A stretch of 63,936 nucleotides of DNA, counting the filler, from Octopus bimaculoides (lineage: Eukaryota), in the NCBI RefSeq assembly GCF_001194135.2. It is 5 parts of 5 records of this genome, joined end to end, with 100 filler letters (N's around TTAATTAATTAA, not from the genome) between each part and the next. Parts side by side here need not be neighbours in the genome. Positions count along the whole stretch, not along the records: positions 26,489 to 53,123 come from NC_068984.1; 4 more parts are not named here. The stretch is one strand, 5' to 3'. The translations under genes were made by a program, and so were the position numbers. Of the stretch, positions 26,489-51,013 are shown in pieces. The notes beneath the pieces were generated by a model. That model had not been told where the DNA came from, did not search any database, and was given only the letters and a program-made list of their open reading frames with translations. Within the stretch, counting starts at the first letter, position 1, and each line of letters opens with the position of its first letter.

Positions 26489-26830
26489 AGCCCATCCCGC
26501 TCAAAAGGTCACTGAATAAGGTTTGTTTAAGGATGTTGAGCAAAACACCCATGTTTCTAGAGGTGAATTATTCAAACTCCAATGAATTCCTCTCAACACA
26601 TGGCTATGATGCTCCCCCACTACTTCTGCTCGTGATCAGAGATTTACATATTGTCAGCCACTAAGGAACAAGCTCAACTGGTTAAGGTCAAACAACTGAC
26701 AAGCAAATTTGTGGTATTGAGCAGAATATTTGCTGTAGCCCATCTTTTTATACCAAGACAAAACAATGTACATAATAACACTTCCAATCAAGATCAGAAG
26801 CCATGAGAGCCACTGCCTGGTCCTGCATCA
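26489..26830 (+). mobile_element. Interspersed repeat family E (probable LINE 3' end); inverted copies at ~47545-47830 and ~62420-62870
   Basis: Three clearly homologous copies (..CTACTTCTGCT(C/T)GTGATCAGAGA..GCAAATCTGTGGTATTGAGC..); LINE origin is inferred. Confidence 0.7.
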
Positions 26831-26839
26831 TTATTATCA

Positions 26840-26920
<81 letters not shown>

Positions 26921-27791
26921 AGGCATGAGCTGGCAGAATTGTTAGCATGCCATATGAAATGTTTAGTGGTATTTCATTTGTCTTTGTGTTCTGATTTGGT
27001 ATGGTTTTCTACGCTTGGATGCCCTTCCTAATGCCAACCACTCCAAGAGTGTAATGGGTGCTTTTACATGCCACTGGCACCGGTGCCATTTGTATGACAC
27101 TGGTATCTGCTGTGACTGTGAGTTTGCTCGGCTTGGTAGTCTTCTTCTCAAGCACAACATAATGCCAAAGGCCTTGGTCATTGCCTCTGTGAGGCCCAAC
27201 ACTTGAAAGGAACCCAGCCACTTTGCCTCCGTGAGGCCCAATACAAGAATACTCAAAAGAAAATCAGTTACTTTGCTCCTGTGAGGCCCAATGCTTGAAA
27301 GGAACTCAGCCATTTTGCCTCCATCAGGCCCAACGTTCAAAGGATGTTCTTTACATGCCACCAGCATGGGTGCATTTGGCTTGATGGGCCTTCTCAAGCA
27401 CAATATATTGCCAAAGGTCTCAGTCACTAGTCATTGCCTCTACTTAATAAACTACTTAATCCCCAAAATGCTGATAGATGCCTCCGTCTTCTCCAGGACT
27501 TAGTACAAGGAAATGTTGAGTAGAATTGTGGAGTGTTTCAACCCTATGAGTTCTTACCTGCATTAGGTAGGCAGCCCTAAATATTTTCTGTTTTTCAAAT
27601 TCAAATTATATCACATTTTAATTTTTGTGCATTTTAAATTATTTTATTTCATTAAATTTTTAATTCACTTACTGTATAACATCTGCACCCTTCTCCCAGT
27701 TGTCAGCCTCTCACACACTTTGTAAACATCAGGTTCTTTAATGATCATATTGTGGTTAATAAAAAAAGACGATAATAATGATTATTATTAC

Positions 27792-27923
27792 CTCCATTGT
27801 CCTTTCGGATGAAACACTTCTGGGTGATAGGGCAAGCAACACGCCCTACATAATAACTGACTGGAGTCTGGACAACTTCTCCGCACAAAGGGTTGTCATC
27901 ATAGCAATCCCAGCAGAAGAAAT
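27792..27923 (-). CDS. Exon encoding the N-terminal half of a second LU domain
   Basis: Acceptor atttcaacttccag| and donor GAG|GTAATA; 132 nt, phase 1-1: (D)FFCWDCYDDNPLCGEVVQTPVSYYVGRVACPITQKCFIRKDNG. By hand alignment 18 of 44 positions are identical to the 46784-46918 exon, including all 5 Cys and CFIRK, and the intron positions are the same. Confidence 0.9.
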
Positions 27924-28445
27924 CTGGAAGTTGAAATATATAACATCAAATTAAATAGCATTTTTGTTCAGCAGCATTGTTCTGAGAAATGGCTATGACA
28001 ACCTAATCTCCTGACAACCTAATCTCCTTCTATGGCATCAACACGGAATCACTATGCACAACACAACACCTTCCTTAATCATTAACCACACACGACTAAA
28101 ACTTACATTGACTTTACAAATACTTAAGCTTGGCAATCTTTGATGACGATAGCAACCACATATCAATGACAGAGTTAAAATTGCTCTTAAAGGACAGGAG
28201 CCACTTCTTCAGGGATCAGAAAATACCTCCAACTGTAAACTGAAAATACTGTACCTTCTTAATAAGACATGTATGGAGCCAACATATTGGGGTGGTTTGG
28301 TGGTCTTAATACACTTACAAACATTCTAGTCTTCCCCACAGCCAACCAATGCAAATTGATAGATAAACAAACTTCCATTCACCATCATACTACAACTTAA
28401 TATCAATTTCTAACACAGGTGCACAGTACTTTAATGTTTTGTGTG

Positions 28446-28503
<58 letters not shown>

Positions 28504-28555
28504 NNNNNNNNNNNNNNNNNNNNNNNNNNNNNNNNNNNNNNNNNNNNNNNNNNNN

Positions 28556-28616
<61 letters not shown>

Positions 28617-28836
28617 CATTTTGATTGCAGCCTCTAAAGACCATATAACTAATTAACCTCCACTCCAGTACTTGACTGATACTAATTTTATCAACGTCAG
28701 TAAGATTTGAACTCAAAATGGATGAAATAATAGCTAAATACTGTAAAGTACTTGTTTTATTGATTCTACCGACCAACCAGCTTTTCAGTAAGTAGTGGTA
28801 CAGAAAATACCAATTCTTTCAGAAAACTCAACTCAC

Positions 28837-29050
28837 CTGATAAGGATTCTTCAATTTCATTTTTGGAAGCTTCTAGATTGTTACCTCCAGCAATTTTGTC
28901 CACTTGTTTGATGTTCTTGGGCTTTACTTTTTGCACCTTATCTGCTGCTGAAGCTCCAGTTGGGACGGCGGCTGCCTCCCAATGCCCAGAATGTTTTGTT
29001 GTTTTGCTGTTTTCCCATCCTTCTTTCTGGGTTGTTTTAGGGGATTTCAC
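28837..29050 (-). CDS. Linker exon of the LU gene (Lys/Ala-rich)
   Basis: Acceptor tttctttcttttcaag| and donor TCAG|GTGAGT; 214 nt, phase 0-1, matching both neighbours: VKSPKTTQKEGWENSKTTKHSGHWEAAAVPTGASAADKVQKVKPKNIKQVDKIAGGNNLEASKNEIEESLS. Confidence 0.85.
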
Positions 29051-30074
29051 CTTGAAAAGAAAGAAATATATTTAAATTTATTTAAGCCTTAGAAAGCATG
29101 GAGGCAAGATGGCTAATATAGTTCTCATTGTTGCTCTGCTCAAGATCAACCCTGATTAAGCAGGCCTATGATCGCAGTCATTCCAGCTATGACCATCATG
29201 TTTATTTTACAGATATAATAAACCTAGGATTATATTATCCATTGATTTTTAAGATGAAAGGGGAGATTTTAGGGGATTTGGCTACCATTTCTAGCAGTTT
29301 GAGTGAGTGAATAGAGGCTCCTTTATCAGCCCATCAAGGTAGCTGTTGGAATCCAGAGTGAGTCTTATGCAAGGGTATGTAACAGATTGGCCTATGAAAT
29401 GTGTGAGAAACATTTTATATAAAGATGGCTGTAGGGTAAAGAATCTTGCTTTGCAACCATGTGGTTTTGGGTTCAGTTCCACATGGCATTTTGGGCAAAT
29501 AATTTATCGACCCTGAAAGGATGAAAGGCAAAGTCGACCTCGGCAGAATTTGAACTCAAAACGTAATGGCAGGCGAAATACTGCTAAGCATTTTGCCTGG
29601 CATGGTGTTTCTTATTTCTTTATTGCCCACAAGGGGCTAAACATAGAGGGGACAAACAAGGAAGACAAAGGGACTGAGTTGATTACATCGACCCCAGTGC
29701 GAAACTAGTACTTAATTTATTGACCCTGAAAGGTGTGCTAATGTTTCTGCCAGCTCGTTGACTTCGAGCTGTCATAGAAAATATTCTATTAGTATCATAA
29801 GGGAAAATTTACCATTGGTCCCACTACAGAGAAAGTTCATATTGGTACTATTAAAGTAAACTTCATGCCAGTACTATTACAGAAGCCTCTTATTGCTACA
29901 ATTACTTTAAAGTTTCTATTTATACTATTAACTAATTTATACAATGACAGAAAATCTCATATAAAAGCATTAGAGTAAACCTCCAAATGGTACATTAAAA
30001 TCCTGTCTGATCTTTATCATTACTGAAAATATTCCAATTGCATCACTGTAAAAGAAAAAACAAAACTTGCTTAC

Positions 30075-30340
30075 CGGGCTGTCCTCAAACTCCTTTGTAC
30101 GAATTCCTCTGATACCATTTATTTTCTGTTTGTTGTTGCGGTTATTGTTGTTGTTGTTGTTGTTATTGCTGCTGTGTTTAGCCTTCCCATCCATCCAGTA
30201 GGGTCTCTCAGTTGACCAGTGTACATACCACCACCACCAAGGTAGAATGGTGGTAACAGAAGATGAAGAGTGAGGTACATGTTGTTCCATAGCATCAACC
30301 TCTTCAGACTCCATCTCTTCCTCGTCACTGACCATTTCAA
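30075..30340 (-). CDS. Linker exon of the LU gene (acidic tract, Trp cluster, poly-Asn)
   Basis: Acceptor ttttattgcag| and donor CCG|GTAAGC; 266 nt, phase 1-0, open: (V)EMVSDEEEMESEEVDAMEQHVPHSSSSVTTILPWWWWYVHWSTERPYWMDGKAKHSSNNNNNNNNNRNNKQKINGIRGIRTKEFEDSP. Confidence 0.85.
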
Positions 30341-31138
30341 CTGCAATAAAATGGAGAGACAACATTTGAATACCTTAACAAACAACAGGAAAATAACGGA
30401 TTTGACTACAGTTTCTAAATACAACGGAATGGAATCAGTGGCGGACTGGCCAGGTTGCCAGCTTGCCCAATGGCAAGTGGGCCCCTGTGCCATTAGAATC
30501 CATATATGAGGGCCCATGTTAGTATCTAAGGGGCCCATCCCCTCAAGTTTGAGAATTTTTTATTCACTCCTGGAAGAATGCATTAATTATTTCAGCCTGG
30601 CTGTGTTTGTAGTCAGTTGAAAAGAATACTTTTAACAAAAAAAAAAAAAATTAAATTATAGCATTGTAGTTGTGGGTGCCCCCCCCCCCCCTTAGTCTCC
30701 TGGCAACCAATATCTTTAAACCCAGTCCGCTACTGAATGGAATATAAGCTGAGGGACTGAAAGAAGTTGAGAATTGATAGTGTGTGTGGTTTATATGGTA
30801 CCAAGTGAACCTGATACCAAATAAATGTGGCCACCAATTCCATCATGCTTAAATGAAGAATTCTAAATGTTTGGGACAAAAGAAGAAACCACTCAATCTC
30901 TGGGGTGTTATTGTTGTTGTTGTTTAACACTAGATGAAACTTCAGCAAGCGGCCTTTGACCAAATGCATTCCAGCTGTAACCATCCTGTCATTTAGAGGT
31001 TTATCTGGGACTCTGGAAGAATGAAAGGCAAAACTGACCTCCGGTGGGAATATAAAGATACATCACCAAACAGCAAAATATTTCAGCTATCACTACCAAT
31101 CCTTCAACTCGTTGTCCTCCTCTTCCTCCTCCCCCTCC

Positions 31139-31172
<34 letters not shown>

Positions 31173-32444
31173 GGTGGTGGTGGTGGTTTCAAATTTTGGC
31201 ACAAAGCCGGTAATTTTGAGGGAGGGGATAAGCCAGTTACATTGATCCTGGTGCCCAATTGGTGTTTGTTTTACTGACTTCGGAAAAATGAAAGGTAAAG
31301 TCAACCTCAGTGGAATTTGAACTCAGAACTACCAGAAGCAGTGCTGCTTAATGTTTTATCCAACATGTTAACAATTCTGCCAGCTCATGACATCATCATC
31401 ATCGTTTAACGTCCATTTTTCATGCTGGCATAGGTTGGAAGGTTTGACTTAAGACTGGCAAGCCAGGAGACTGTACCAGGCTACAATCTGATGTGGCAAT
31501 GTTTCTACAGCTGGATGCTCTTCCTAATGCCAACCACTCCGAGAGTGTAGTGGGTGCTTTTTATGCACCAGCAATATGGGAGCCAGTCAAGCAGCACTGT
31601 CATCAACCACACTCAGATGGTGCTTTTTATGTGCCACCAGCATGGGTTCCAATCAGGCAGTACTGACATCAACCACGCTCAGATGGTGCTTTTTATGTGC
31701 CACTAGCATGGGAACCAGTCAGGTGGCACTGGCATCGGCCACACTAGTTCCTTTAACTGTAGGTATAAGGCCTGAAATTTTGGGGTATAGCTGCAAGTCA
31801 GTTACACTGACTCCAATGCTTGGCTGGTAGTTGTTTTATCAACCTCTAAATGATGGAAAGCTAAGTCAATCTCTTGCCGCCACATAAACTCAATTTTTTA
31901 GTGGGGAGGTAACCCAGTTTTTAATGGCAATTTTATAATAGGGGTGAGATAATCAAAAAGTACTTTCATTTCTTTTTAAAGTCTGGTACTTATGTATCGG
32001 TTTCTTTTGCCGAACCGTTAATTTACAGGGACGTAAACAAACCAGCACCGTTTGTCAAGCGGTGATGGTGACGTGCGCGTGCGAGTACGTACATACGTAT
32101 GACAGGCTTTGTCTACAAAATCCACTCACAAAGTTTTGATTGGCCAGGGGCTGTAGTAGAAAACACTTGCTCAAGGTGCCACGTAGTGGACTGAACTGGA
32201 AACCACGTGGTTGAGGAGCAAACGTCTTCTCATAAAACTACGCCTTTGTCTGACAAGCGATGTAAATATGTAACGTGCTTTGTCAGTTATCTCCCCTGCT
32301 CCGTTATACCAAAATAATAAGTAACCAACAGGTCTAAGTGAGCAAACAATTTAGTAGTGTTGAAATGAACTCCAATGGTGCTGTGAACAAAACAACCGCT
32401 TAATAATAAGCTAATAATCTCTCTCTCCCTCACACACACACACG

Positions 32445-32518
<74 letters not shown>

Positions 32519-33867
32519 CTCTCTGGGAAGCTGTCCAGCATCTTTGTACAGTTTTTACTAGTTATTATTAATCATTGATTGAAAGGCAATCATACCTGGT
32601 TACATCAATTCATTCTCTCCTTCTCCTTTTCCTTAATTCCCTCCCAATTTACACACACACACACACGTGTCTTTCAATATTCATTCATTTATATTTTAGC
32701 TTCATTTATGTTTGTTCCTATCCACAATTGTATAGACTAGACTAAGCTATAGAATTTATTCATGTGTGTATTTGCTTGTAGTGAATGCACACAATTATTC
32801 TATTCACTCAAATATATTATATATACATATTGTTTGCCTTCTCTTTTGCTTGTATTATATATATTTTTTAGACTGAGACAGTGTAAATAGCTATCTATGC
32901 ATATATGATTATTAGCCTATAAAACCGAAGATATGTTTGTATCTCATCAATGGTAGTGAACCATCTCTGGTAAACATTACCTTTCCCTCAATGCCTTACA
33001 TTTAGGGTAGATTGTTGTTAAACTCAGGTCAGCTCTAATCTAATAGAACCATGATGAAAGTTATTCCAACCGTAACCATCTCAGGGATCACTTAGCTTAA
33101 TGGTACAACACACTCAGCCTTATACCTACACAACAGTACTCTTTCACCCCCGAATTTGTTTTCTCATAATTCTTAGAAAAATGGATTTTTTAAAATGAAG
33201 TTTTCAACGAATACTTTTCAGTTCCTATTATATTGGAATTCCTATTATAATGGAATTTTATGTAAAAAAAAAAACAAGAAAAAGGAAAGAAAATATCAGT
33301 GGCTGTGCACACATTCATACTGACACACATCATCATCATCATCATCGTTTAACGTCCGCTTTCCATGCTAGTATGGGTTGGACGATTTGACTGAGGACTG
33401 ATGAACCAGATGGCTACACCAGGCTCCAATCTGATTTGGCAGAGTTTCTACAGCTGGATGCCCTTCCTAATGCCAACCACTCTGAGAGTGTAGTGGCTAC
33501 TTTTACGTGCCACCGGCNNNNNNNNNNNNNNNNNNNNNNNNNNNNNNNNNNNNNNNNNNNNNNNNNNNNNNNNNNNNNNNNNNNNNNNNNNNNNNNNNNN
33601 NNNNNNNNNNNNNNNNNNNNNNNNNNNNNNNNNNNNNNNNNNNNNNNNNNNNNNNNNNNNNNNNNNNNNNNNNNNNNNNNNNNNNNNNNNNNNNNNNNNN
33701 NNNNNNNNNNNNNNNNNNNNNNNNNNNNNNNNNNNNNNNNGGAGACGACGTTGGCATGGGTGCCAGTCCACATATATATATCTGCAAAATGAAACTGGAA
33801 GTGTTGAAAAAAGTTGTGATGTGTGCCTGTATATATACATGTGTATGCCCACCATTCTTATATTTTT

Positions 33868-34140
33868 TCACATTAAATTCTGTTGTAATCATAATTTACA
33901 CTATCTGAAAACTATTTGTAGAAGATTTCATTAAGAAATACCCATTTTTCTGTAAGTTGTGAGGAAACAAAATCAATTTCTGTGAATTATTTGAAACTCT
34001 TTTCCCTACTCAGAAAAAATTTTTTGTCACATTAAATTCCAATGTAATTGTAATCTACACCGTCTGGAAGGTTCTTGTAGAAAATTTCATTAAAAAATTT
34101 TTCTTCTTTTTTTTGTAAGTTATGAGAAAACAAAATCAGT
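33868..34140 (+). repeat. Imperfect direct duplication of ~110 bp with a 160-bp period
   Basis: CACATTAAATTC...TGTAAGTT.TGAG.AAACAAAATCA occurs at ~33868-33975 and ~34028-34138. Confidence 0.7.
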
Positions 34141-34767
34141 GGGAAAGGGATTCACACATTTATAGATGTGCCATCTTCTTATCGTTTCAGTAAGCTAAGG
34201 CCACATTATCTACATTATATGTCCTTTCCTAATTGAAGAGAGTACTTTGCAATTTGAGGGACATTTCACTGCCATTTCTTCCAGGTTGAACGACTTTGTA
34301 GAGGTCATCTTGTTGAGAAGAGTGTTATTGTTGTTTATTTATCAGTTGGCCATAACTGAGCAGACTCACAACCAAAGGGAGCTCATACACAATTATTTTG
34401 GTGGGGGCGGAGGGTTCTTTGGCATATTTAGGGCCATCTTACACAATGTATCTTGCCTTTACTAAGACAATAAGCTAATGTCAAAGGTGAAATTGCTGCA
34501 TAAATTTAGTATAGTTTAGGCAAGAGTGTGGCTGCATGGTTAAGGAGTCCACTTTGTAAACATGTGATTTCAGGTTCAATCCCAGCTGTGCGGTATCTTG
34601 GGTGAATGTGTTCTGTCATAATCACCTCAGTTTGACCAATAACTTGTGAGTGAATTTGGCAGACAAACTCAGCAGAAGCCTGTCATACATGTGCTTGTGT
34701 GTGTGCATGTGTTTGTGTGTGTGCATGTGTTTGTGTGTGTGCATGTGTTTGTGTGTGTGCATGTGTT

Positions 34768-34814
<47 letters not shown>

Positions 34815-35314
34815 TTGCTTGACTACTGGTGTTCCTTTGTTTATGTCCTCACAACAGCTGAGAAAAGAAAAAAGAAAAGAGACCAGTAAAATAACTACCA
34901 GAATTAAAATTAGTTCTGGGGTTGATTTGGTTGATTAAATCTGAAAAAAGTAGTGCCCCAGCATGGCCACAGTCTAATGACTGGAAAAAAATAAAAGAAC
35001 AGTATAATGTTTAGTCTGAAGTTTTGTAGGTTAATATTTCAGTGAAAAGGTGTTGACAAAGAGTCAACTCGTTATTATCATGTGTAATGCAGCATGACTA
35101 CAAAACAATAACCTGAAAGCATAATTAATGTTTATAGAAGGTCATATGATGGCTACATTTCTAGCTGACAAAGAGGATAATAAACTCTTGATGCCAATTG
35201 TGGAATTGTTGTTCCATGACTTTACAAAAACTGTTAGAGTTATAACTCTAATATTATTTCATAGCAAAACCAATAATATTTTATACATATAATCCTGTTA
35301 TATATATATTAAAA

Positions 35315-35852
35315 TCATCATCGTCATCGTTTAACGTCCACTTTCCATGCTAGCATGGGTTGGACGATTTGACTGAGGACTGGCGAACCAGATGGCTACA
35401 CCAGGCAGAGTTCTACAGTTGGATGCCCTTCCTAATGCCACCACTCTGAGAGTGTAGTGGGTGCTTTTACGAGGGCCAGTCAGGCGGTACTGGCAACGGC
35501 CATGCTCAAATGGTGTTTTCTATGTGCCATCTGCACAGGAGCCAGTCCAGCGGCACTGGCAATGACCTCGCTCGAATGTTTTTTCATGTGCCACCGGCAC
35601 AAGTGCCAGTAAGGCGATGCTGGTAATGAACATGCTCAATGGTGCTATTTACGTGCCACCAGTATGGAAGCCAGACAGCTGCTCTGGCAATGATCATGCT
35701 CAGATGGTGCTGTTAGTGCTCCACTGGCACAGGTGCCAGTCAATGAATTTGGTTCAATTACGATTTCGATTTCACTTGCCCCAACAGGTCTTCACAAGCA
35801 GAGTTTAGTGTCCAATGAAGGAAAGGTATGCATAAGTGGACTGGCTACACCC
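35315..35852 (-). mobile_element. RTE-tail-type retroposon family D with internal ~50-bp tandem repeats
   Basis: On the plus strand CATCATCGTTTAACGTCC..CATGCTAGCATGGGTTGG followed by GCCAGT..GCACTGGCA..GGTGCT units. Other copies approx.: 26990-27430, 31385-31745, 33330-33517, 40045-40350, 44020-44240, 50185-50365. Confidence 0.75.
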
Positions 35853-36308
35853 NNNNNNNNNNNNNNNNNNNNNNNNNNNNNNNNNNNNNNNNNNNNNNNN
35901 NNNNNNNNNNNNNNNNNNNNNNNNNNNNNNNNNNNNNNNNNNNNNNNNNNNNNNNNNNNNNNNNNNNNNNNNNNNNNNNNNNNNNNNNNNNNNNNNNNNN
36001 NNNNNNNNNNNNNNNNNNNNNNNNNNNNNNNNNNNNNNNNNNNNNNNNNNNNNNNNNNNNNNNNNNNNNNNNNNNNNNNNNNNNNNNNNNNNNNNNNNNN
36101 NNNNNNNNNNNNNNNNNNNNNNNNNNNNNNNNNNNNNNNNNNNNNNNNNNNNNNNNNNNNNNNNNNNNNNNNNNNNNNNNNNNNNNNNNNNNNNNNNNNN
36201 NNNNNNNNNNNNNNNNNNNNNNNNNNNNNNNNNNNNNNNNNNNNNNNNNNNNNNNNNNNNNNNNNNNNNNNNNNNNNNNNNNNNNNNNNNNNNNNNNNNN
36301 NNNNNNNN

Positions 36309-36343
<35 letters not shown>

Positions 36344-38332
36344 CGCGCGCGCGCGTGTGTGTGGGTGTATGTATATATATGTGTGTATATATGCTGAGAC
36401 CCCCTTCGGTCATGACTGACCATGGGATTGCACCTAGAAAGTTACCCTCCAAGGCACAAGTTCGTGCAAGTTTGTTTATGGGAGACCAGCAGTCGCCCAT
36501 GCATACTGGTCTCCCCTCTCCATGCCACTGATGTTATCCAAGGGTACACGTGTCTGTGGAATGCTCAGCCACTTGCATGTTACTTTCATGAGGAAACTGT
36601 TTAGTTTATCAGATAAACTGGAACACTTATTGTTGTAATCAATGAAGAGCCAGGCCACCGACTATTCTTGTATTCCTGGGCGAAAATATCCTTCACACAA
36701 TTGACCCCTTTGAAACTGCTATAAAGGGGACTGAAGCCACTATACAAGGGACTGAAACCATCTTCATAGTCATGTCCTTCACATCTATATCCCAACATAA
36801 TCTAAGCTCATAATCTCAAATTCTACAAATGCTGCTTACATAGCCGCTCTGTTTCAATATATTAAGATGAGAAAGCTATGGACAAAGCTTGGAAAAAATA
36901 AATTGCCTCTCTCTAGAAAACAGATGGCTTTTATTCACTATCACAACTATCAACATCTAATGCCCTTCCATCTCTCTAATTGCAGCTGGTTCTTCTGGTT
37001 CATTTCTAAAAGGATCCTTATCAACTTTCTGAAATCCTCCTACTAAATCCTCTCCAACCATGTTTGCTCCATAATTAGTAATCTTACATAGGGCAGCAAG
37101 CACACTGGGCAAAATACTTAGTGGTATTTCATCCATCTTCAGGCTCTGAGTTCAATTTCTGCCAAGGTTGACTGTGCCTTTTATCCTTTCTGGGTCAATA
37201 AAACAAGTACCAGTCGAATACTGGAGTCGATGTAATTGATTTATTCCCTCCTCCGAAATTGCTGGCCTTGTGCCAAATATTGAAATCAATTAGTAATCCT
37301 ACAAAGAAAGCTTTTACATTTGCTGCTGAATCTGTATTCAACTCTATATTGCTCAAGCTTGCCAGAACTTCACTAATTTCAGTTTTTCTTTCCTTGAATG
37401 TCGACATTTTTTGTACAGACATCGTCCTGCAGCAATTCAAGCTAAACAAACAATCACATCAAAGTAGAGTGTCAACAAAGATCATGGATACAGTCTCTTC
37501 TTCCTGACTAAAACCATACACTGACCAGTTTGGAAAATGATGCTGTATGGTACTTCATATAACTTTACCTTCTTAAAATTTTGTCAGATCTAGTATTTAC
37601 ACAATGGTTTATTTAGTAGCAGTAGATTTACACTCGCTTTGTTAAGTCTTATAATGGCTTTGATATTCTGGATAAGGGAATCAGAAAGCACTTGAAACTG
37701 GTTGCCAATGTATGACCTGTTGTTGGCACTCCGTTGCTTACGATGTCGAGGGTTCCAGTTGATCCGATCAATGGAACAGCCTGCTCGTGAAATTAACATG
37801 CAAGTGGCTGAGCACTCCACAGACACGTGTACCTTTAATGTAGTTCTCGGGGATATTCAGCGTCACACAGTGTGACAAGGCTGACCCTTTGAATTACAGG
37901 CACAACAGAAACAGGAAGTAAGAGTGAGAGAAAGTTGTGGTGGAAGAGTACAGCAGGGTTCGCCACCATCCCCTGCCGGAGCCTCGTAGAGCTTTAGGTG
38001 TTTTCGCTCAATAAACACTCACAACGCCTGGTCTGGGAATCAAAACCCCGATCCTATGACCGCGAGACCGCTGCCCTAACCACTAGGCCATTGCGCCTCC
38101 ACACAATGTATGACCTGAGGATGAGTTAATACTCTGGAAGATATAAATGTTTAGTCATAATGAATATGTAGGGTATGATCTGCAGAGTTTATAGATGTAT
38201 TGCACTAGGAAGTATAAGGATATTTAAGCTTAGAAACATATATAATGACTTTAAAGATGTGGTGTAGCACAAAGAGCATAACAAAATTAACTATAAAGGT
38301 GTCTAGTAAATTCGTCATAGCTAATTACATTG

Positions 38333-39157
38333 CAGGTAATACATCCCCTGAAATTTCATCACCTGATAATTTTATTACAAGGTAAATTAGGGTTTTTGGG
38401 CAATATGTCATCAGTAAATTCGTAAGCATTTCAAATACATCAACAATAAATTTATAGCTCATACTTTCTATCTGAAGAGTAATTACATTACTAAATGTAA
38501 TTATTTAAAGTTTTTATTCACAGAGTAAATATTACACAGTAAACAATGCAAAATAAATTCAAAAACAATAAAAATTCGTTAGAATTGAATTTACTCAATA
38601 TAAGAATGAAAAATACAAAAAGTTACTTTTAAAAATGAAATTACAAAAATGCATTATTTTCAATTGGAGGAAAGGCCAGAAAGTAAAAAAAAAAACCATT
38701 GTAAAAACACATTATGATCAATGTCACTTAAACAATGCAGTATTTCACAATTTTGTTGATGTCCATTGACAACATGTCTAATTCTTGCTGCACTATTATA
38801 ATGCTTTATGTAATAATGAGGAATTTCTGCGCTGGTGATATACTGATCAATTGTTACTTTATTTCTTGATTGTTTCTTTTCCAAGATTTCTAAACGTTTC
38901 CAAACTGTAGGATGGAATTATTTCTCTTTCAAATTTCTTTTTCATTGTTAATGAAAAGCAGCACAATTACTCTGTGAATAAAAAGTTTACATAATGTTTA
39001 GCAATGCATTTTACTCTGTGAATAACAAACTCATGTTGAAGAATTTACCGATGACGTATATGGCATGACGATGAATTTACCAATGACGTATTGGCTCACA
39101 ATGTAAATTACCTTGTAATAAAATTACAAAATGAAATTATAGTGATGTGTTTACCAG
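38333..39157. mobile_element. Non-autonomous DNA transposon with long imperfect TIRs
   Basis: Ends CAGGTAATACATC and GATGTGTTTACCAG; mirrored blocks TTTTATTACAAGGTAA / TTACCTTGTAATAAAA and TTATTCACAGAGTAAA / TTTACTCTGTGAATAA. Confidence 0.75.
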
Positions 39158-39208
39158 GAGGAATTTAAAGGGAACCTTCTATAAGCACTGGAATATACAA
39201 GTACTTAC

Positions 39209-39247
39209 CTGGATTTTCTGCATCTTGATTGAATTCATGAATTTCAC
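39209..39247 (-). CDS. 39-nt linker exon of the LU gene
   Basis: Very strong acceptor tttttctacctttgtttacttacttattttcag| and donor CAG|GTAAGT; phase 1-1, open: (G)EIHEFNQDAENP. Confidence 0.75.
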
Positions 39248-40613
39248 CTGAAAATAAGTAAGTAAACAAAGGTAGAAAAATATATTCTTATGTATTTTCT
39301 CATGCTAATATGGGTCAGACAGTTTTCAAAGTTTGTGTCATAGAACCAGGAATACTCTTGGTACCAAAAGGGTTAAACTATTTCAACATTTACGAAACCC
39401 AAGTTTCTAATATCAAACACTTGACTTTGACATCAATGTGATTCCTATTTTCAATCCAAACTTTGAGGGTATTCTTTTATTCTTTTATTCTTTTATTCTT
39501 TTATTCTTTTATTCTTTTACTCGTTTCAGTCATTAGACTGCAGCCATGTGAGGGCATTGGCTTGAAGAAATTTTAGTCAAATGGATTGACACCAGTACTT
39601 AACTTTTATTAAGCCTGGCACTTATTCTATCGGTCTCTTTGCCAAACCAGTAAGTCACGAGGACGTAAACACACCAACACTGGTTGTCAAACGGTGGTTA
39701 GGGACAGACACAGACACAAAGAGACACACATATACACATACATATATATGACGGGCTTCTTTCAGTTTCTGTTTACCAAATTGGAACATACCATACATTA
39801 TATCCAACAACCTAAAGACTCTACCAATTCACCTTTGTGAATAATGTGAATTATAAACTTCATATAATAGTTTATTATACATAAAAGTAACAGCTTTGAA
39901 ATCCTTGTTCTATCATAACCAGTTATCCAATACATGAAACATCGTATTTAATGGCATATAAGATGCATTTTTTTTTCCACAAAACAAAAATGCCTCAAAA
40001 TTCACCCCAGGTCCTATATGTTTATTTACTTTAAATATTGCCAGTGGCACGCGAAAAAACATTTGAGCGAGGTCGTTGCCAGTGCCGCTGGACTGGCTCC
40101 TGTGCAGGTGGCATGTAAAAAGCACCATTTTGAGCGTGGCCATTGCCAGTACCGCCTGACTGGCCCTCATGCCGGTGGCACATAAAAGCACCCACTACAC
40201 TCTCGGAGTGGTTGGCGTTAGGAAGGGCATCCAGCTGTAGAAACTCAGCCAGATCAGATTGGACCCTGGTGCAACCATCTGGTTCGCCAGTCCTCAGTCA
40301 AATCATCCAACCCATGCTAGCATGGAAAGCAGACGTTAAACGATGATGATTGGTTTCAGATTTTGGCACAATGCCAGCAGTTTTGAAGGAGGGGGCTAAG
40401 TCAATTAAATGAGCCTCAGTGTTCAACTGGTACTTATTTTATTGACCCCAAAAGGATGCAAGGCAAAGTGACTCCTGCAGCATTTGAACACAGGATGTGA
40501 AGACAGATGAAATGCTTCTAAGCATTTTGCCTGATGTGCAAACGATTTTGCTGGTAGACAGACAATTCGTCGACAGACAGTTGGCCAACAGACAACTTAC
40601 AGACAGGACAATC

Positions 40614-40743
40614 GTGTGATATGGTGCAGAGTCCTGTTGCCAGACATAGGGTGTTCCAGCAGCCACCCTCTTGACCCAGGGCAGCACAACCTCCTCCAGG
40701 CACTTGATGTAGGCCTCTGTGTTGAGTCTGAGGCTGTGTGGGA
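40614..40743 (-). mobile_element. DD37D-type transposase fragment held between repeat arms
   Basis: PHSLRLNTEAYIKCLEEVVLPWVKRVAAGTPYVWQQDSAPYH. Confidence 0.8.
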
Positions 40744-41414
40744 ATTGTCTGTCGGTGAATTGTCTGTCAGCAAATTGTCAGCACACGGATTCTGCCAGCT
40801 TGCTGCCTGATAATTACTTTAAATATTACAAGCTTTAGTGCACTAAAACCAATTTTTCCAGAATAAGGGCTGTTGAAATTGGGGTGTGTGTTTAATATGC
40901 CTGTCTGTCTTTTATTTCCATGTAGTGTAAATAGATTGAGTTTGATACCGGGAGGCATGTTGTGTCTTTGAGCAAGACACTTTATTTCATGTCGCTTCAG
41001 TTCACTCAGCTGATAAAAACGAGTTGTACCTGTATTTCAAAGGGCCAGCTTTGTCACATTCTGTGTCATGCTGAATCTCCCTAGGAACTTTGTTAAGGGC
41101 TATATGCATCTCTGGAATGCTCATCCACCTGCACATTAATTTCGTGAGCAGGTTGCTCCATTGATCGAACCAATTGGAACACTTGTCGTTCTAATTGACA
41201 TTGTGCCAGTGTAAACAGAAAATGTTGGTGAGATGAAATAAAAAAAGAATACCAGGAAACTGAATTGCAGAAAATCAATGTTTCATTCCACTGACAGTAT
41301 TCCATATAAGACTAGATGAATAAGAATAGACACCAAATCATTCTGCTGGTTCCTGTTCTGGCTGGGAGCCGCTAACACACATGCACACACACACACACAC
41401 GCACACATGCATGT

Positions 41415-41448
<34 letters not shown>

Positions 41449-41784
41449 GCAGGCAGCAGAAGAGGAGGCAACTTTGGGTTGCAGTTTATGTGGCCGATGC
41501 ATTTGAACAATGAGAGAGAGAGTAATGTCTTTCTCTCAATGGTCAAAAAATTAAAAAATAAATAAATAAGCGGTACAAAATTGTGAATGGACTAAAACTC
41601 TATCAAGTTGTATGAGAGCTACTACAAATTCTACTATGATTAGGGCTGCAAGCACAATAACACTTCAGGCCTTGGATGCAATAGATGAAGTTTTACACCA
41701 AGACCTTCTAAACAAAAAGTAATTTGAGACATCAACCATTGAACGTTTAGAAATTAAACAAAGCACATCTTTTTCTGTCCTTAC

Positions 41785-41949
41785 CATTCAGTTTCTTCAC
41801 ATCTGCCATTGATTGGCCATTGCAGAGGTCTGTGTCACAGAAACACCATTCCTGGGGCTTCATCCATGCTGGGACTTGTTCCTGGCAACCGAGGTAGTCA
41901 GAAACAATGGAGCTAAACATCCACCAATCAGCACATCCACGTGAAATCA
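41785..41949 (-). CDS. Exon encoding the C-terminal half of LU domain 1
   Basis: Acceptor ccattatgtttcag| and donor G|GTAAGG; 165 nt, phase 1-1. Joined to the previous exon it reads M-ISRGCADWWMFSSIVSDYLGCQEQVPAWMKPQEWCFCDTDLCNGQSMADVKKLN, with RGC and the diagnostic CxCxxDLCN end, giving 10 Cys in total. Confidence 0.92.
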
Positions 41950-42003
41950 CTGAAACATAATGGAATTCTTAGTTGCAATTACTATAACAATTTCCTTCTG
42001 TAT

Positions 42004-42049
<46 letters not shown>

Positions 42050-42195
42050 CTGTGTGTATGGACATATGTGTGGACATATGTGTATGCGTATGCATATGCC
42101 TGTGTGTGTATGAGTGTATGCACAGGTGTGTGTACTTCTGTAAATGTTTGTCAATAACTAGGTTTATATACTACGTGTAACAGATAAATAATTAA

Positions 42196-42407
42196 GGCAG
42201 TGAGCTGGCAGAATCGTAAGCATGCTGAGCAAAATGCTTAGCAGCATTTCACCTGTCGCTACATTCTGAGTTCAAATTCTGCTGTGATTGATTTTGCCTT
42301 TCAACCTTTCGGGGTCGATAAATTAAGTACCAGCGAAACACTGGGGTCGATGTAATCAACTAGTCCCCTCCTACCAAATTTCAGGCCTTGTACCTTTAGT
42401 AGAAAGG

Positions 42408-42442
<35 letters not shown>

Positions 42443-42910
42443 GACGGCAAGTTAGCAGAATTGTTAGTACACTGGACGAAATGTTTAGTGGTATTTCATC
42501 TGTCTTTACATTCTGAGTTCAAATTCTACTGAGGTTGACTTTGCCTTTCATCCTTTCAGCGTTGATAAATTAAGTACCAGTGAAACACTGGAGGTCGATG
42601 TAGCCGACTAGGCCCCTCCCGCCAAATTTTAGGCCTTGTGCCTTTTGTAGAAAGGATTATTATTATTATTACAAAGATGGCAAACTGGCTGAATTGTTAG
42701 CACACTAAGCAAAATACTTAGCAGTATTTCCTGTCTTTGTTTTCTGAGTTCCAGTTCCATCAAGGTCAGCTTTGTCTTTTATCCTTTCAGGGTTGATAAA
42801 TTAAGTACCAGTGAAACACTCTGGTCGATGTAACCGACTAGTCCCCTCCCCCAAAATTTCAGGCCTTGTGCCTTTTGTAGAAAGGATTATTATTATTATT
42901 ATTATTATTA
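42196..42910 (+). mobile_element. Three head-to-tail SINE family A copies separated by (TTA)n tails
   Basis: Copies at ~42196-42420, ~42443-42670 and ~42676-42910, each ending TAGTAGAAAGGATTATTATT or TTGTAGAAAGGATTATTATT. Confidence 0.9.
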
Positions 42911-43139
42911 ATGTCGAGATATGAAGAGAACACTGAAAGTGCATGGTGTCAACTGTCTCAATTGACCATGACCCAGATTTGTCACGTGAAAGTCATTATT
43001 ACGAGAGTCATAGATACATCCAATATGAATCATATATCAGAAAATCACATGTGTGTGTGTGAGGAAAGAGAGAAGGGGAGAGAGGGAATATGATGTGTGT
43101 ATATGTGTGTGAGAGTATGATAGAGAGTGTGTGTGAAAA

Positions 43140-43170
<31 letters not shown>

Positions 43171-43573
43171 AAGAGTGCATGTGTGGGAGTATGTGCACGC
43201 TTGTATGTAAGAGAGGGAAAGAGAAAATGTGAATATGTATGTGAAAGAGAGAGAGAGAGAGAGGTAGAGAGAGTGTGTGTGAAAGATATATATATATATA
43301 TAGATATATATATATATATATATATAGATAGATAGATAGATAGATAGATAGATTGAGAGAGAGAGAGAGAGAAGGAGAACGTGTGTGTGCATGAAAGAGA
43401 GATAGAGTGTGCATGTGTTTGTGTATGAGAGAGAGAGGCGGGTGTTTATTTGTGTGTGTGCTTTTTCAGAAACAAAAAAGAAAAATGAATGAGTGAGAGG
43501 AATGAGAAAAAGAGAATGTAATGGAAAGCAAGAGAGAATGTGTGAGAGATGTGACTGAAGAGAGTAAGAAGGT

Positions 43574-43611
<38 letters not shown>

Positions 43612-45455
43612 CAAGGAGTAAAAGAACCGACACAGCTATGAATTGAGTGAAAGATAGACAGACAGACTACAATAGATACAATGTATTATGAAGCCAGACA
43701 AATCTCAGACAGCATTCAGGAAGAAAATGTAATGTTGAGGCAATTGTGTACCAACATGTTTAATGGATGGAGCATTTAAAAAGTGAAAAAGAATACATTA
43801 TGTGACAAGGAAAAATATTTAGTCAATGAATAGTAATTGTGGCTTGAATGCCACAGCAAAGGATCACATGACATTCTTTAAGCCAACTCAACTGGCAGGA
43901 AAACTAAGGAAAGACCATGAGTGAGATGGTCAAGTAATATCCCACCAGACTTCATTTCAAACCCCAAAATATGTACAGGACTTCATTTCGAACCCTTAAC
44001 ATTTAAACCAGCCATATCTGGCCAGTACCGCCTGACTGGCCTTCGTGACGGTGGCACGTAAAAGCACCCACTACACTCTCGGAGTGGTTGGCATTAGGAA
44101 GGGCATCCAGCTGTAGAAACTCTGCCAGATCAGATTGGAGCCTGGTGCAGCCATCTGGTTCACCAGTCCTCAGTCAAATCGTCCAACCCATGCTAGCATG
44201 GAAAGCGGATGTTAAATGACGACGATGATGATGATGATGATGCTGAGTCAGTGTTCTTTATTTTGCAGATTTTCTTTCATTTGTGGGATTGATGTAGGGA
44301 TGTCTCGGTATTCCTTTATCCTTTTATTTGTTTCAGTCATTTGACTGTGGCCATGCTGGAGCACTGCCTTTAGTTGAAGAAATTTACCCCAGGACTTATT
44401 CTATGTAAGCCTAGTACTTATTCTATTGGTCTCTTTTTGCCGAACTGCTAAATTATGGTAAATTATAGGCTCCGGGGAAGATGAAGGCAAGGAGAAACCA
44501 GGCGCCTGGACTAAATATAAGTGAAAGAATTCTGCTAAATGAGCCCAAGGAATAGATAGATGCATTAAATCAAGCAGTATTTTTAGATCTACCACTTTAA
44601 TCTTGAGTATCACCACCATAGTGATTCCTTATCATAACTTAAGTAGCAGGAAATGAATCATTAATTAGTCATAATAAAAATATAGATATAAAGCACAGGC
44701 ATGGGATGCATAGGTGCATGCATAGATGTGTGGTTAAGAAGCTTGCTTCCCAACCATATGGTCTTAAGTTCAGTCCCACTGTGCAGCAACTTGGGTAAGT
44801 GTCTTCAACTATGGCCTTTGGTCTGATCAAAGCCTTCTGAGAGGATGAGGATTTTGTAGATAGAAATAGAAGCTGAATGAAGCCTGTCATATATATATAT
44901 ATATATATATACCTGTAAATAATATGTAACAATTATTCGGTAGCCATGATAAAACTCTGAGTTTTATCAAAGAAATGCATCGAAAAATGCTATGGCCAGA
45001 TAACTGAAGAGATGGCGGCGTGGGTTTCCGCCATGACATCCAAAACTTGGAGTTTTATCATGGCTACCGAATAATTGCCACATATTATTTACAGATAAAT
45101 TCCTCTATTTACATAATATCGAGGTCTCTTTCTTTCTTTTGTTATATACGATGGGCTTCTTTTAGTTTCCGTCTACCAAATCCACTCACAAGGCTTTGGT
45201 TGGCCCAAGGCTATAGTAGAAGACACTTGCCCAAGGTGTCATGCAGTGGGACTGAACCCAGAGCCATGTGGTTGGTAAACCAGCTACTTACCACAGAGCC
45301 ACTCCTGTGCCTATTTTTTTTACATATACATATATAATATGAATATTTTCAAATATTTNNNNNNNNNNNNNNNNNNNNNNNNNNNNNNNNNNNNNNNNNN
45401 NNNNNNNNNNNNNNNNNNNNNNNNNNNTATATATATATATATGCAAGTATGTGTT

Positions 45456-45486
<31 letters not shown>

Positions 45487-46179
45487 GTTTGTGTATGTGT
45501 TTGTGTGCACTATTATTTAGACATCACATGATGGTTGTCAATGACCACCACTGCCATGCAAGCATGGAAAAGAGGACATTAAATAATGCTGACAATGTTT
45601 GTTGGAGTAAAAAATAAAAATAGAACTATATTTGATTTCTAAATAATGCTATTTTGTTAGTTTGTTACTGCTCTGGAAATTTAATGAATTATTTCAAATA
45701 TGTATTCTAGTATTGACACATTTGAAATAGGATCTTGTAGTGATCTAGCGAATCTACTATCTTTTATCTTTTATTTTGTAATTGTTTTAGTCATTAGACT
45801 GTGGCCATGCTGGGGCACCACCTTGAAGAATTTTAGTCGAATGAATTGACCCCAGTCTTTACATTTTTTTATAAGCGTGGTGCATATTCTATCAATCTCT
45901 TTTGCCAAACCATTAAGTTACGAGGACATAAGCACATCAAAACTGGTTGTCAAGTAGTGGTGGTGCAAAAACACGCACAAAAGCGGGGACACACACACAC
46001 ACACACACATATGTATAGGCATAGGTTTGGTTGTGTGGTAAGAAGCTTGCTTCTCAACTACATGGTTCTGGGTTCAGTCCCACTGCATGACACCTTGAGC
46101 AAGTGTCTTTTACTAAAACCTTGGGCTGACCAAAGCCTTCTATGTTGATTTGGTAGACAGAAACTGAAAGAAGCCTATC

Positions 46180-46228
<49 letters not shown>

Positions 46229-46523
46229 CATACATATATATATACATGTGTGCGTGTATGTGTATATGTATATGTATATATATGTGTGTGTGTGTGTATA
46301 TTTATGTGTGTGTGTCTTTGAGTCTGTGTTTGTTTCCTTCTTACCACTTGACAACCAGTGTTGGTGTGTTTACATCCCCTAACTTAGCAGTTCGACAAAA
46401 GAGACCGATGAATAAATACTAGGCCTAAGAAATAAATCTTAGGGTTGATTTGTTCAACTAAAAAAAACCTTCAAAGTGGTGCCCCAGCATGGCCACAGTC
46501 AAATGACTGAAACAATTAAAAGA

Positions 46524-46566
<43 letters not shown>

Positions 46567-46783
46567 GGGCTTCTTTCAGTTTCCATCCACCAAATCCACT
46601 CACAAGGTTTTGGTCAGCCCACTGCTATAGTAGAAGACCCTTGCTGAAGGTGCCACACAGTGGGACTGAACTCAGAACTATGTGGATGGGATGCAAACTT
46701 CTTACCATACAGATATTATTGTGGAAAATCTAGATATATCACATTTGTATGTTGATATTATTTAGTTTGGAACAGGTACTTAC

Positions 46784-46918
46784 TTCCATCTTTCTCTTTG
46801 CGAATAAAACATGTTTTTGTGACATTGCACTCAACTGTAGCTACAGCTTCAGGGAATGGTGAATCAACAGAACTGGCACAGTAAGGGTTCCAACTGGTGC
46901 AGTCGTAGCATATTGTGG
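46784..46918 (-). CDS. Internal exon of a two-domain Ly6/uPAR (three-finger, quiver-like) protein: N-terminal half of LU domain 1
   Basis: Polypyrimidine acceptor ttcatttttctctttactttag| and donor A|GTAAGT; 135 nt, phase 1-1. Translates to (A)TICYDCTSWNPYCASSVDSPFPEAVATVECNVTKTCFIRKEKDG, with the CxxC start and 5 Cys typical of an LU N-half and an N-V-T sequon. Confidence 0.9.
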
Positions 46919-49500: not shown

Positions 49501-51013
49501 CCCATGTTGGCCCAGTGGTTAGGGCAGCGGACTCGCGGTCATAGGATCGTGGTTTCGATTCCCAGACCGGNNNNNNNNNNAGCCTTGTCACACTGTGTCA
49601 CGCTGAATATCCCCAAGAACTACGTTAAGGGTATACGTGTCTGTGGAGTGCTCAACCACTTGCACGTTAATTTCACGAGCAGGCTGTTCCATTGATCGGA
49701 TCAACTGGAACCCTCGAAGTTGTAAGCGACGGAGTGCCAAACATATATATATATATATAGTGTGGGTGCATGGCTCAGTGATTAGGGCATTGGGCTCACA
49801 ATCATCACTGTGAATCATGAGGTAGTGAGTTTGATTCCCAGACCGGGTTGTGTCTTGTGTTCTTGAGCCAGACACTTTATTTCACATTGCTCCAGTTCAC
49901 TCAGCTGTTGAAATGAGTTGCGATGTCACTGGTGCCAAGCTGTATCGGCCTTTGTCTTTCCTTTGAGTAACATCAGTAGCATGGAGACGGGAAGCTGGTA
50001 TGCATGGGCAACTGTTGGTCATCCATAAACAACCTTGCCTGGACTTGTCGCTTGTGTGTGTGTGTGTAAGTGGACAAAAGAAAGAAAAAGGCACAGTTTG
50101 ATTTGGTTCCATGCAACTTAAAGTTTCATGGGCCTCTAACAGAAACTCATCTCTTTTAGGCTTAGGTTACCAATTATTTGGTATCATCATCATCATCATC
50201 ACTTAACATCCGTTGTCCATGCTGGCATGGGTTGGATGGTTTGACTGGGGCTGGTAAGCTGGAAGGCTGCAACCAGACTCCAGTGTGATTTGGCATGGTT
50301 TTCCATAGCTGGATGCACTTCCTAATGCCAACCACTCCAAGAGTGTAATGGCTGCTTTTACATGCATCTGTACATATTTATATATAAATATGTACAGCAT
50401 CATGTATATGTAATATATATACATATATATATACATACACACACACGTATATACATATAATTTATATGGCACAGAAGATTATTGCCAATAACAGCTGGTA
50501 TGGTATTTTTAAGACTGAATCAATGGATAACGAAAAGCTCAAAATAGTCCTTCTTGACAGCACCTTTCATACTAAAGAAATCTTTTCTTTACAACATTGC
50601 CTCTGAGAATCCTGTGAAATTCAACTTTAAAACTCCAATCTAAAAGAGGCTACCATGAACATATACACAAATACATACATACATGCATATATATATATAT
50701 GTATATGTGTGTACATATATGTATATGCGTATATATATATACATATACTATCATCATCATTGTGATGTATGTGTAATAAATATATATATATATGCATATA
50801 CATAGACACACACACTCACATATGCACACACACACACATGCACATACACTCACACACACGCACGCATGCACACACACACTCACTCACACACAAACATGCA
50901 TATAATTCATATGCTGCAGGTGACTATTATCATGCATAGGACAATAAAACCTTGCATGACCTTAAGATTGCTGAATGGATAATGAAAATATGTATACATA
51001 TACACACATATTA

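Follow-up and report, generated by a model that had tools for sequence, protein, structure and literature searches.

The DNA analyzed here (the window, 63,936 nucleotides at its full length) comes from Octopus bimaculoides, and its piece at positions 26,489 to 53,123 carries exons 2 to 7 of the nine-exon gene LOC106878805 on chromosome CM046604.1. This gene encodes a protein with two Ly6/uPAR (LU) domains, LU1 and LU2, which are joined by a long linker. Six minus-strand exons were re-derived from the sequence, each preceded by an AG with a pyrimidine tract and followed by GT(A/G)AG:

46784..46918, minus strand: exon 2, first half of LU1 (TICYDCTSWNPYC...CFIRKEKDG), phase 1-1
41785..41949, minus strand: exon 3, second half of LU1 (MISRGCADWW...WCFCDTDLCNGQSMADVKKLNG), phase 1-1
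39209..39247, minus strand: exon 4, a 39-nt mini-exon that opens the linker (EIHEFNQDAENP), phase 1-1
30075..30340, minus strand: exon 5, linker with an acidic stretch, a Trp motif and a poly-Asn run, phase 1-0
28837..29050, minus strand: exon 6, second linker exon (VKSPKTTQKEGWENSKTTKHSGHWEAAAVPT...EESLS) with a weaker conserved patch (G...W...P), phase 0-1
27792..27923, minus strand: exon 7, first half of LU2 (LU2a; DFFCWDCYDDNPLCGEVVQ...CFIRKDNG), phase 1-1

The exons measure 135, 165, 39, 266, 214 and 132 nt, from which the listed phases follow, and they splice to 951 nt with one open frame only, the other two frames containing many stops. The translation of 316 amino acids (aa) begins TICYDCTSWNPYC, contains ten cysteines up to CFCDTDLCN, continues for about 185 residues without any cysteine and then enters LU2, of which the last exon in the window holds only the first half (FFCWDCYDDNPLC...CFIRKDNG). 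A preliminary description of this DNA had proposed the same exons, splice sites, phases and open frame together with a complete ten-cysteine first domain, and all of these were confirmed by the re-derivation and in the translation. It had also placed three of the exons outside the track of open reading frames (ORFs); at a threshold of 40 aa, the last exon is partly inside a listed ORF (27745-27888). Its view of the gene as hidden was not borne out, as the gene is annotated as LOC106878805 with isoforms X1 and X2 and has named orthologues in O. sinensis, O. vulgaris, Argonauta, Haliotis, Patella and others. The 316-aa translation matches RefSeq XP_014783635.2 (isoform X1, uncharacterized protein) with 100% identity and 100% coverage, and the exon joins are exactly those of RefSeq. 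Exon 2 is identical to XP_014783635.2 and shares 98% nucleotide identity with O. sinensis, where exon 5 has a counterpart of 94% nucleotide identity and the mini-exon one that is 97% identical (O. sinensis locus, referred to as L002, 52492-52530).

Runs of N occur at 28504-28555, 33518-33740, 35853-36308 and 45359-45427, all of them intronic with no exon touched. The gap-free O. sinensis locus has the same exon set and order with no additional coding sequence at the matching junctions, and the proteins of the two species are colinear except for a poly-Asn indel of three residues; the gaps therefore leave the continuity and frame of the visible exons unaffected. The poly-Asn run is encoded by a coding (AAC)n microsatellite in exon 5 (30132-30167, minus strand), which reads SSNNNNNNNNNRNN as compared with NSNNNNNNRNN in O. 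sinensis.

Both ends of the gene fall outside the piece, which represents CM046604.1, approximately 132,926,128-132,952,762, in reverse complement and corresponds to positions 27987-54621 of the wider 63-kb O. bimaculoides locus (L001), with assembly gaps on both sides. Neither the signal-peptide exon, nor the exon for the second half of LU2 (LU2b), nor the terminal exon was found in the piece by tblastn with word size 2 and an exact peptide search. Two of the three were then located in the wider locus: the signal-peptide exon (MPYSVVRGFLILLSCSFVTIFSK) at L001 10001-10072, 24 kb upstream of the exon at 46784-46918, and the terminal exon (11 aa, ENQDPQKSKVQ*) at L001 57589-57624, beyond a gap of 2,206 N. 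LU2b was not located there.

That the locus holds one gene with two LU domains of the Quiver (QVR) type, as had been proposed, is supported by the RefSeq exon joins, by Pfam and by the occurrence of the same architecture in more than ten mollusc species. The Pfam family QVR (PF17064) matches residues 3-88 of the window translation with an E-value of 1.4e-6 and 29.7 bits against a gathering cut-off of 27.3, whereas the O. sinensis protein gives two matched stretches with 44 bits and Haliotis two matches with 42.8 bits (E of about 1e-10 in both species). LU1 ends in WCFCDTDLCN, while LU2 of O. sinensis is complete and ends in WCFCSSPLCN, so that the ten-cysteine domain of about 60-100 residues ending in C-(x)-C-x4-C-N which defines the Ly6/uPAR superfamily is present. 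The ten cysteines and the final asparagine are invariant across twelve LU domains of the mollusc family, and in an alignment of 22 domains nine cysteines and the asparagine are invariant, with the tenth cysteine present in at least 90%.

LU1 is confidently modelled as a three-finger fold. AlphaFold2, run with the LU-domain alignment, gave a mean predicted local distance difference test score (pLDDT) of 92.2 and a predicted template modelling score of 0.84, and the best 16 Foldseek matches of this model in the PDB are all three-finger proteins, including a short alpha-neurotoxin bound to the nicotinic acetylcholine receptor (nAChR), atratoxin-b, Lynx1, TGFBR2, BMPR2, uPAR, TEX101 and CD177. The probability is 0.96-1.0 for the top four matches, with marginal E-values of 5e-3 to 0.5, as is usual for such small domains. 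The gene layout agrees with this assignment. A canonical LU gene consists of a signal-peptide exon followed by two exons per LU domain flanked by phase-1 introns (PMC6600238); here the signal-peptide exon is separate and the two LU1 exons and LU2a are all of phase 1-1. The LU2b exon would have this phase as well, since the old RefSeq model leaves it out without losing the frame.

The layout of LU1, linker and LU2 was observed in Octopus and Argonauta and in the gastropods Haliotis, Patella, Littorina, Babylonia, Pomacea and Batillaria. We define the mollusc family by a signal peptide, LU1 (..RGCxDWW..), the Trp linker and LU2 (FFCWDC...YRGCADGW...), and the window translation fits it in all elements save LU2b. 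In a rough neighbour-joining tree of the LU domains, which are short and for which the tree carries no support values, LU1 and LU2 each form one clade of cephalopod and gastropod sequences. Since both clades span the two classes, the duplication appears older than the cephalopod-gastropod split, and the family is probably very old. A special link to cephalopods, which the preliminary description had raised, is not upheld by a family of this age. Two models of Pomacea canaliculata have misleading names: P0016, in which LU2b is lost in a seemingly frameshifted or mis-spliced model (AAAAAAAAGYLPQS...), and P0017, which was auto-named 'histone-lysine N-methyltransferase SETD1A-like', presumably from its low-complexity linker.

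The linker has 182 aa in Octopus and reaches about 375 aa in Babylonia. Its proposed disorder in the octopus protein is supported by AlphaFold2, which models it at very low confidence; in the full-length O. sinensis model the pLDDT is below 35 at residues 126-293 save for a short helix at a WWWW run, the sole helix predicted in the linker. The most conserved element lies in exon 5:

30201..30245, minus strand: conserved Trp-rich linker motif, LPWWWWYVHWSTERP (alignments A1, A2 and A5)

This Trp motif, where the sole helix is predicted, follows an acidic stretch and has the consensus [LVW]WxW(x0-2)Hxx[ST][DE]RP in all twelve mollusc sequences examined, the W, H, R and P being invariant. Its two-group form is LWxWHADSDRP / WWWWYVHWSTERP, with gastropods having LW[FW]WHADSDRP (for example LWFWHADSDRP). 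A second, weaker patch reads WxWGxGWGHIxPWW in gastropods and KEGWxNSKTTKHSxHW in octopus, with G233, W246 and P252 invariant (O. sinensis numbering; alignments A1 and A2). Compared with O. sinensis, the ratio of non-synonymous to synonymous substitution rates (dN/dS) is 0.073 overall, 0.123 in the linker (15.5 synonymous and 8.5 non-synonymous changes), 0.029 in LU2a and 0 in LU1. The linker was at first taken for a plain flexible tether, a view that is not supported given this purifying selection and an invariant Trp-rich motif common to cephalopods and gastropods; it is thus a case of a 'disordered tether' with a conserved, putatively functional element.

The order of elements in the protein is a signal peptide, the ten-cysteine QVR-type LU1, the linker of about 185 aa, the ten-cysteine LU2 and a short hydrophilic tail. 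Apart from the signal peptide, no hydrophobic peak occurs in the octopus and gastropod proteins. Their C-termini are hydrophilic, the last 20 aa having a mean Kyte-Doolittle value of -0.5 to -1.6 across the orthologues. Neither a glycosylphosphatidylinositol (GPI) signal nor a transmembrane segment was found in the orthologues with intact 3' ends, from which the product is predicted to be a soluble secreted protein that lacks the GPI tail of QVR/Lynx-type membrane-tethered modulators. In O. bimaculoides the C-terminus depends on the 11-aa terminal exon past the gap. An octopus paralogue with a single LU domain, LOC106875938 (263 aa; UniRef name 'Activin types I and II receptor domain-containing protein'), has a long tail and a hydrophobic C-terminus and is likely, judging from its sequence, to be GPI-anchored or transmembrane. 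The gastropod orthologues carry a long Ser/Thr-rich, mucin-like C-terminal tail (alignment A1, columns 700-923; P0003, P0012, P0013, P0015, P0016 and P0018) that ends in a conserved [FYL][KRL][AS][LF].G, for example YRALNG, YKAFGG or FKALLGK, and this tail is absent from the cephalopod proteins.

A profile search of 1.84 billion representative proteins returned 99 matches, thirteen of them with an E-value below 1e-30, and all of the matches with source names are lophotrochozoan. The closest relatives outside the molluscs are Lingula anatina XP_013400288 and Owenia fusiformis CAH1788342, each with two QVR matches and a C-terminal CBM_14 domain (E of about 1e-10). These uncharacterised proteins, together with Lingula XP_013418462, resemble the mollusc proteins in being secreted, in having two LU domains with a long low-complexity linker and in the LU subtype YRGCxDGW...YxGC..Q...WCFC....CNG, with profile E-values of 7e-55 and 4.5e-50. 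The two groups differ in that the Lingula and Owenia proteins have CBM_14 (Peritrophin-A) at the C-terminus and no Trp motif, whereas the mollusc proteins possess the Trp motif but not CBM_14, which Pfam did not find in the Octopus or Haliotis proteins. A relative in Capitella combines one QVR/LU domain with CBM_14, and another Owenia protein has two LU domains with a linker of GQGDM repeats between them. An LU domain of the same subtype also occurs at the C-terminus (residues 797-890) of an ADAMTS-like protein of Lingula anatina (XP_013391772, 'adt-1', 891 aa).

The QVR family (Quiver/Sleepless) shares with the octopus protein the ten-cysteine LU domain ending in C-x-C-x4-C-N, the three-finger fold, the signal peptide and the two-exon phase-1 layout. 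QVR/SSS and the majority of the insect members, however, have a single domain with a GPI anchor, whereas the octopus protein has two domains, belongs to a family with linkers of 180-375 aa and has no anchor. In multi-LU proteins such as uPAR the LU domains are closely spaced. Known multi-LU proteins include uPAR, C4.4A/LYPD3, Haldisin/LYPD5, CD177, the two-LU proteins of zebrafish chromosome 21 and Drosophila proteins with 2-44 LU domains (PMC6600238). They are similar in having tandem LU domains in one chain and the two-exon structure repeated for each domain, and in the zebrafish two-LU proteins both domains have all ten cysteines. They are GPI-anchored, unlike the soluble protein predicted for octopus, where the domains lie about 185 aa apart with a motif-bearing linker between them, and the mammalian members uPAR, C4.4A and Haldisin do not have the 7-8 disulfide in the N-terminal domain, whereas LU1 keeps its ten cysteines, predicted to form five disulfide pairs. 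The architecture had been called unusual on first inspection; two LU domains in one protein are already known from zebrafish, Drosophila and mammals (PMC6600238), but the constrained linker with a Trp motif is not described in the papers found.

Three single-domain systems offer more limited parallels. The combination of an LU domain with a disordered acidic segment recurs in GPIHBP1, in which that segment takes part in ligand binding. This would be a functional analogy, as GPIHBP1 is a GPI-anchored protein found in mammals only, with one LU domain, and its sequence relationship is limited to the fold. The SLURP-1/2 proteins are soluble, unanchored LU proteins that serve as extracellular ligands, but they are single-domain vertebrate proteins with no linker. 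The insect protein Retroactive (Rtv) is a three-finger protein of a chitinous extracellular matrix, whose predicted interaction with chitin would be made by aromatic residues in its loops, and it promotes the trafficking of Knickkopf into the procuticle (PMC3561106). Being single-domain and GPI-anchored, it is no more than a precedent for matrix-associated LU domains.

Searches of the literature with the identifiers of the gene and its orthologues, for LU with CBM14 and for shell-matrix links found no paper on this family. Orthologues of the same architecture exist, but none was found described in papers. What is already known are multi-LU proteins as such, and the gene and its orthologues as uncharacterised RefSeq proteins; what is undescribed in the papers found is a soluble family of LU1, Trp-motif linker and LU2, mollusc-wide and related to the LU-LU-CBM_14 proteins of brachiopods and annelids.

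The integrity of the gene in O. bimaculoides turns on LU2b, which lies in no sequenced base of the 63-kb locus. A complete LU2 is encoded in O. sinensis (411 aa) and O. vulgaris (...FIRKDNG|VTYRGCADGWKDSSVDYFYVGCRNQTIWGRNVEWCFCSSPLCN...), the O. sinensis LU2b exon, which begins VTYRGCADGW..., being about 1.7 kb past LU2a. We consider it very probable that LU2b is missing from the assembly only, most likely inside the gap of 2,206 N (L001 54622-56827, CM046604.1:132,923,922-132,926,127, a length that is an estimate only), and that the real protein resembles the 411-aa one of O. sinensis. A true truncation by deletion of the LU2b exon, which would leave LU1, the linker and a non-folding half domain in line with RefSeq X1 or the older exon-skipping model, agrees with the absence of LU2b from all sequenced bases, and under strict colinearity with O. 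sinensis the exon would begin about 350 bp past the last orthologous match, just before the gap. It is nevertheless unlikely, because the alignment to O. sinensis past LU2a breaks off exactly at a high-copy short interspersed nuclear element (SINE), dispersed repeats rather than orthologous sequence fill the 534 bp next to the gap (window 26489-27022), and at least about 5 kb of O. sinensis sequence is without an O. bimaculoides counterpart other than the gap. Furthermore, LU2a remains under strong purifying selection (seven synonymous changes and one non-synonymous change against O. sinensis), and LU2 is intact in O. sinensis, O. vulgaris and Argonauta. Mis-ordered contigs carrying LU2b were considered from a match between O. 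sinensis 69184-69419 and L001 57134-57370 and were rejected, as this segment is a high-copy SINE with 50 matches in L002 and 22 in L001, the O. bimaculoides copy being insertion-like with a target duplication of about 17 bp. A homologue search with the LU-domain alignment returned no O. bimaculoides transcript fragments with LU2b, only fragments from other taxa. With respect to the gene as a whole, the suggestion that two separate single-LU genes have been stitched together through spurious linker ORFs draws on the odd composition of the linker, with poly-Asn from the (AAC)n microsatellite and the WWWW run, and on the computational origin of the gene model. We regard it as almost certainly wrong, since no stop or GPI signal follows LU1 and no signal peptide precedes LU2, the linker has a dN/dS of 0.12 and a motif conserved from Octopus to Haliotis, Patella and Littorina, and in Haliotis one exon covers both the second half of LU1 and the first part of the linker, the bulk of which is encoded by a single exon of 564 nt; the same layout is also predicted independently in Argonauta and the gastropods. 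Cleavage of the linker in a precursor, with release of two independent single-LU proteins, would suit a long, disordered linker whose length differs from species to species, and certain gastropod linkers contain basic clusters, such as RRK and RRR in Littorina. However, no dibasic or furin-type site is positionally conserved across the alignment, and the conserved linker elements are the Trp motif and the acidic stretch rather than cleavage sites, which makes such processing improbable.

The best explanation as a whole, to which we assign a probability of roughly 0.5, is a secreted two-LU gene with LU2b in the assembly gap and a product that acts as a multivalent binder, for which a matrix or chitin partner is favoured. 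LU/three-finger domains are versatile extracellular binders. The protein would work extracellularly, each of the two three-finger modules presenting a binding face, and we lean towards the Trp/acidic linker segment being a third functional site rather than a passive tether. Among the partner classes, extracellular-matrix or chitin-associated ones take the largest single share, although still a tentative one. They are favoured over ion channels because the nearest non-mollusc relatives combine LU-linker-LU with CBM_14, because a further relative carries its LU domain on an ADAMTS-like matrix protease, because the protein is unanchored, unlike GPI-anchored QVR/Lynx channel modulators, and because Retroactive provides a precedent in chitin organisation (PMC3561106). 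A number of observations weigh against this explanation. Neither CBM_14 nor any other matrix domain is present in the mollusc proteins, so that a matrix role would be guilt by association with distant relatives of about 40% domain identity; the Trp motif matches no characterised element in Pfam or among PDB sequences, as no match for its region came from a Pfam scan of the linker or from a profile search of PDB sequences with the linker alone, and the whole-protein profile found nothing relevant among PDB sequences. LU2b is absent from the sequenced locus, RefSeq predicted the gene model computationally, with conservation as the support for its splice junctions, and the full-length AlphaFold2 model is poor (pLDDT 49), silent on how the domains cooperate and unfit for a fold search. 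Finally, the founding member of the Pfam family is a modulator of K+ channels and nAChRs and the structure that matches best is that of an nAChR-bound alpha-neurotoxin. These last two points also speak for the view, put forward in outline by the preliminary description, of the protein as a soluble bivalent prototoxin, in which the LU domains would bind nicotinic-type receptors or K+ channels and the linker would bridge sites or receptors, possibly the chemotactile receptors of octopus. The best Foldseek matches include the short alpha-neurotoxin on muscle nAChR (9avv_F, probability 1.0) and Lynx1, secreted nAChR-modulating LU proteins such as SLURP-1 exist, and QVR/SSS is reported to act on Shaker and nAChRs (PMC6616073 and PMC4735452). 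The likeness is at the level of the fold only, however, with E-values of 5e-3 to 0.1 and 18-24% identity, and BMPR2, TGFBR2 and uPAR score similarly. The nearest relatives bear chitin-binding or protease modules, not neural ones, and QVR/Lynx-type modulators are typically GPI-anchored, unlike the octopus protein. The family is also common to gastropods and older than the cephalopod receptor expansion, so that a specific tie to the expansion of chemotactile receptors is not indicated. A prototoxin of this kind therefore seems unlikely to us, although it deserves more weight than cleavage of the linker.

Beyond the multivalent binder favoured above, a more speculative and rather doubtful extension is that the Trp motif of this undescribed mollusc-wide family is a new binding module that replaced an ancestral lophotrochozoan CBM_14, in a protein that organises or bridges matrix and is not a neural prototoxin. 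If this were true, the Trp element might bind, for example, chitin, another polysaccharide matrix or a receptor, and the protein would be a matrix-organising or matrix-to-cell bridging factor in, for example, the beak, radula, sucker lining or shell. To our knowledge, functional knowledge of LU/three-finger domains comes almost entirely from vertebrates, snakes and Drosophila, and the mollusc LU-LU family is a concrete entry point to LU-protein biology in Lophotrochozoa. For a specialist the surprise would be moderate, as the gene is annotated, multi-LU proteins are known and the role is predicted only.

With regard to annotation, the models that RefSeq now offers for the O. bimaculoides gene very probably have an incorrect 3' end owing to the assembly gap. 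An LU2b exon hidden in the gap would explain both the behaviour of isoform X1, which reads through into the intron to an artefactual C-terminus, and that of the older model XP_014783635.1, which skips the exon and jumps straight to the last one. Two further annotated features in the piece concern these RefSeq models:

27795-27745 (intron part 27745..27791), minus strand: intron read-through of RefSeq X1 to a stop, ..GNNNHYYRLFLLTTI*, the peptide being located at 27795-27748, peptide end GGNNNHYYRLFLLTTI*
42674..42760, minus strand: alternative first exon of RefSeq isoform X2, MELELRKQRQEILLSILLSVLTIQPVCHL, inside a SINE-like dispersed repeat

The repeat around the first exon of X2 belongs to families D5, D10 and I10, which span 42541-42914, and the product of this isoform would have no signal peptide and half of LU1; the exon is probably an annotation or exonisation artefact. 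In O. vulgaris, the model CAI9722074 (713 aa) fuses the LU-LU gene to the neighbouring JKAMP, and as a result a cluster at 90% identity mixes 'JNK1/MAPK8-associated membrane protein' names with the LU-LU protein. The 10 kb downstream of the gene in L001 and in L002 do not contain JKAMP.

Scanning the piece against Rfam gave no matches. The introns (window 26489-53123) are dense with several SINE-like dispersed repeat families in both orientations and with long CA/TG, GA and TA microsatellites, and all except one of the assembly gaps in the piece adjoin microsatellites or repeat copies. Pairs of repeat copies were observed at 33328-33515 and 44049-44236 (94%), at 37723-37882 and 49581-49740 (93%) and at 40145-40350 and 44021-44226 (93%). 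In the O. sinensis gene, the part of the last intron that leads up to the terminal exon (L002 73467-76669) is tandemly duplicated over about 1.5 kb (97% identity); in O. bimaculoides this duplication may be single-copy or collapsed.

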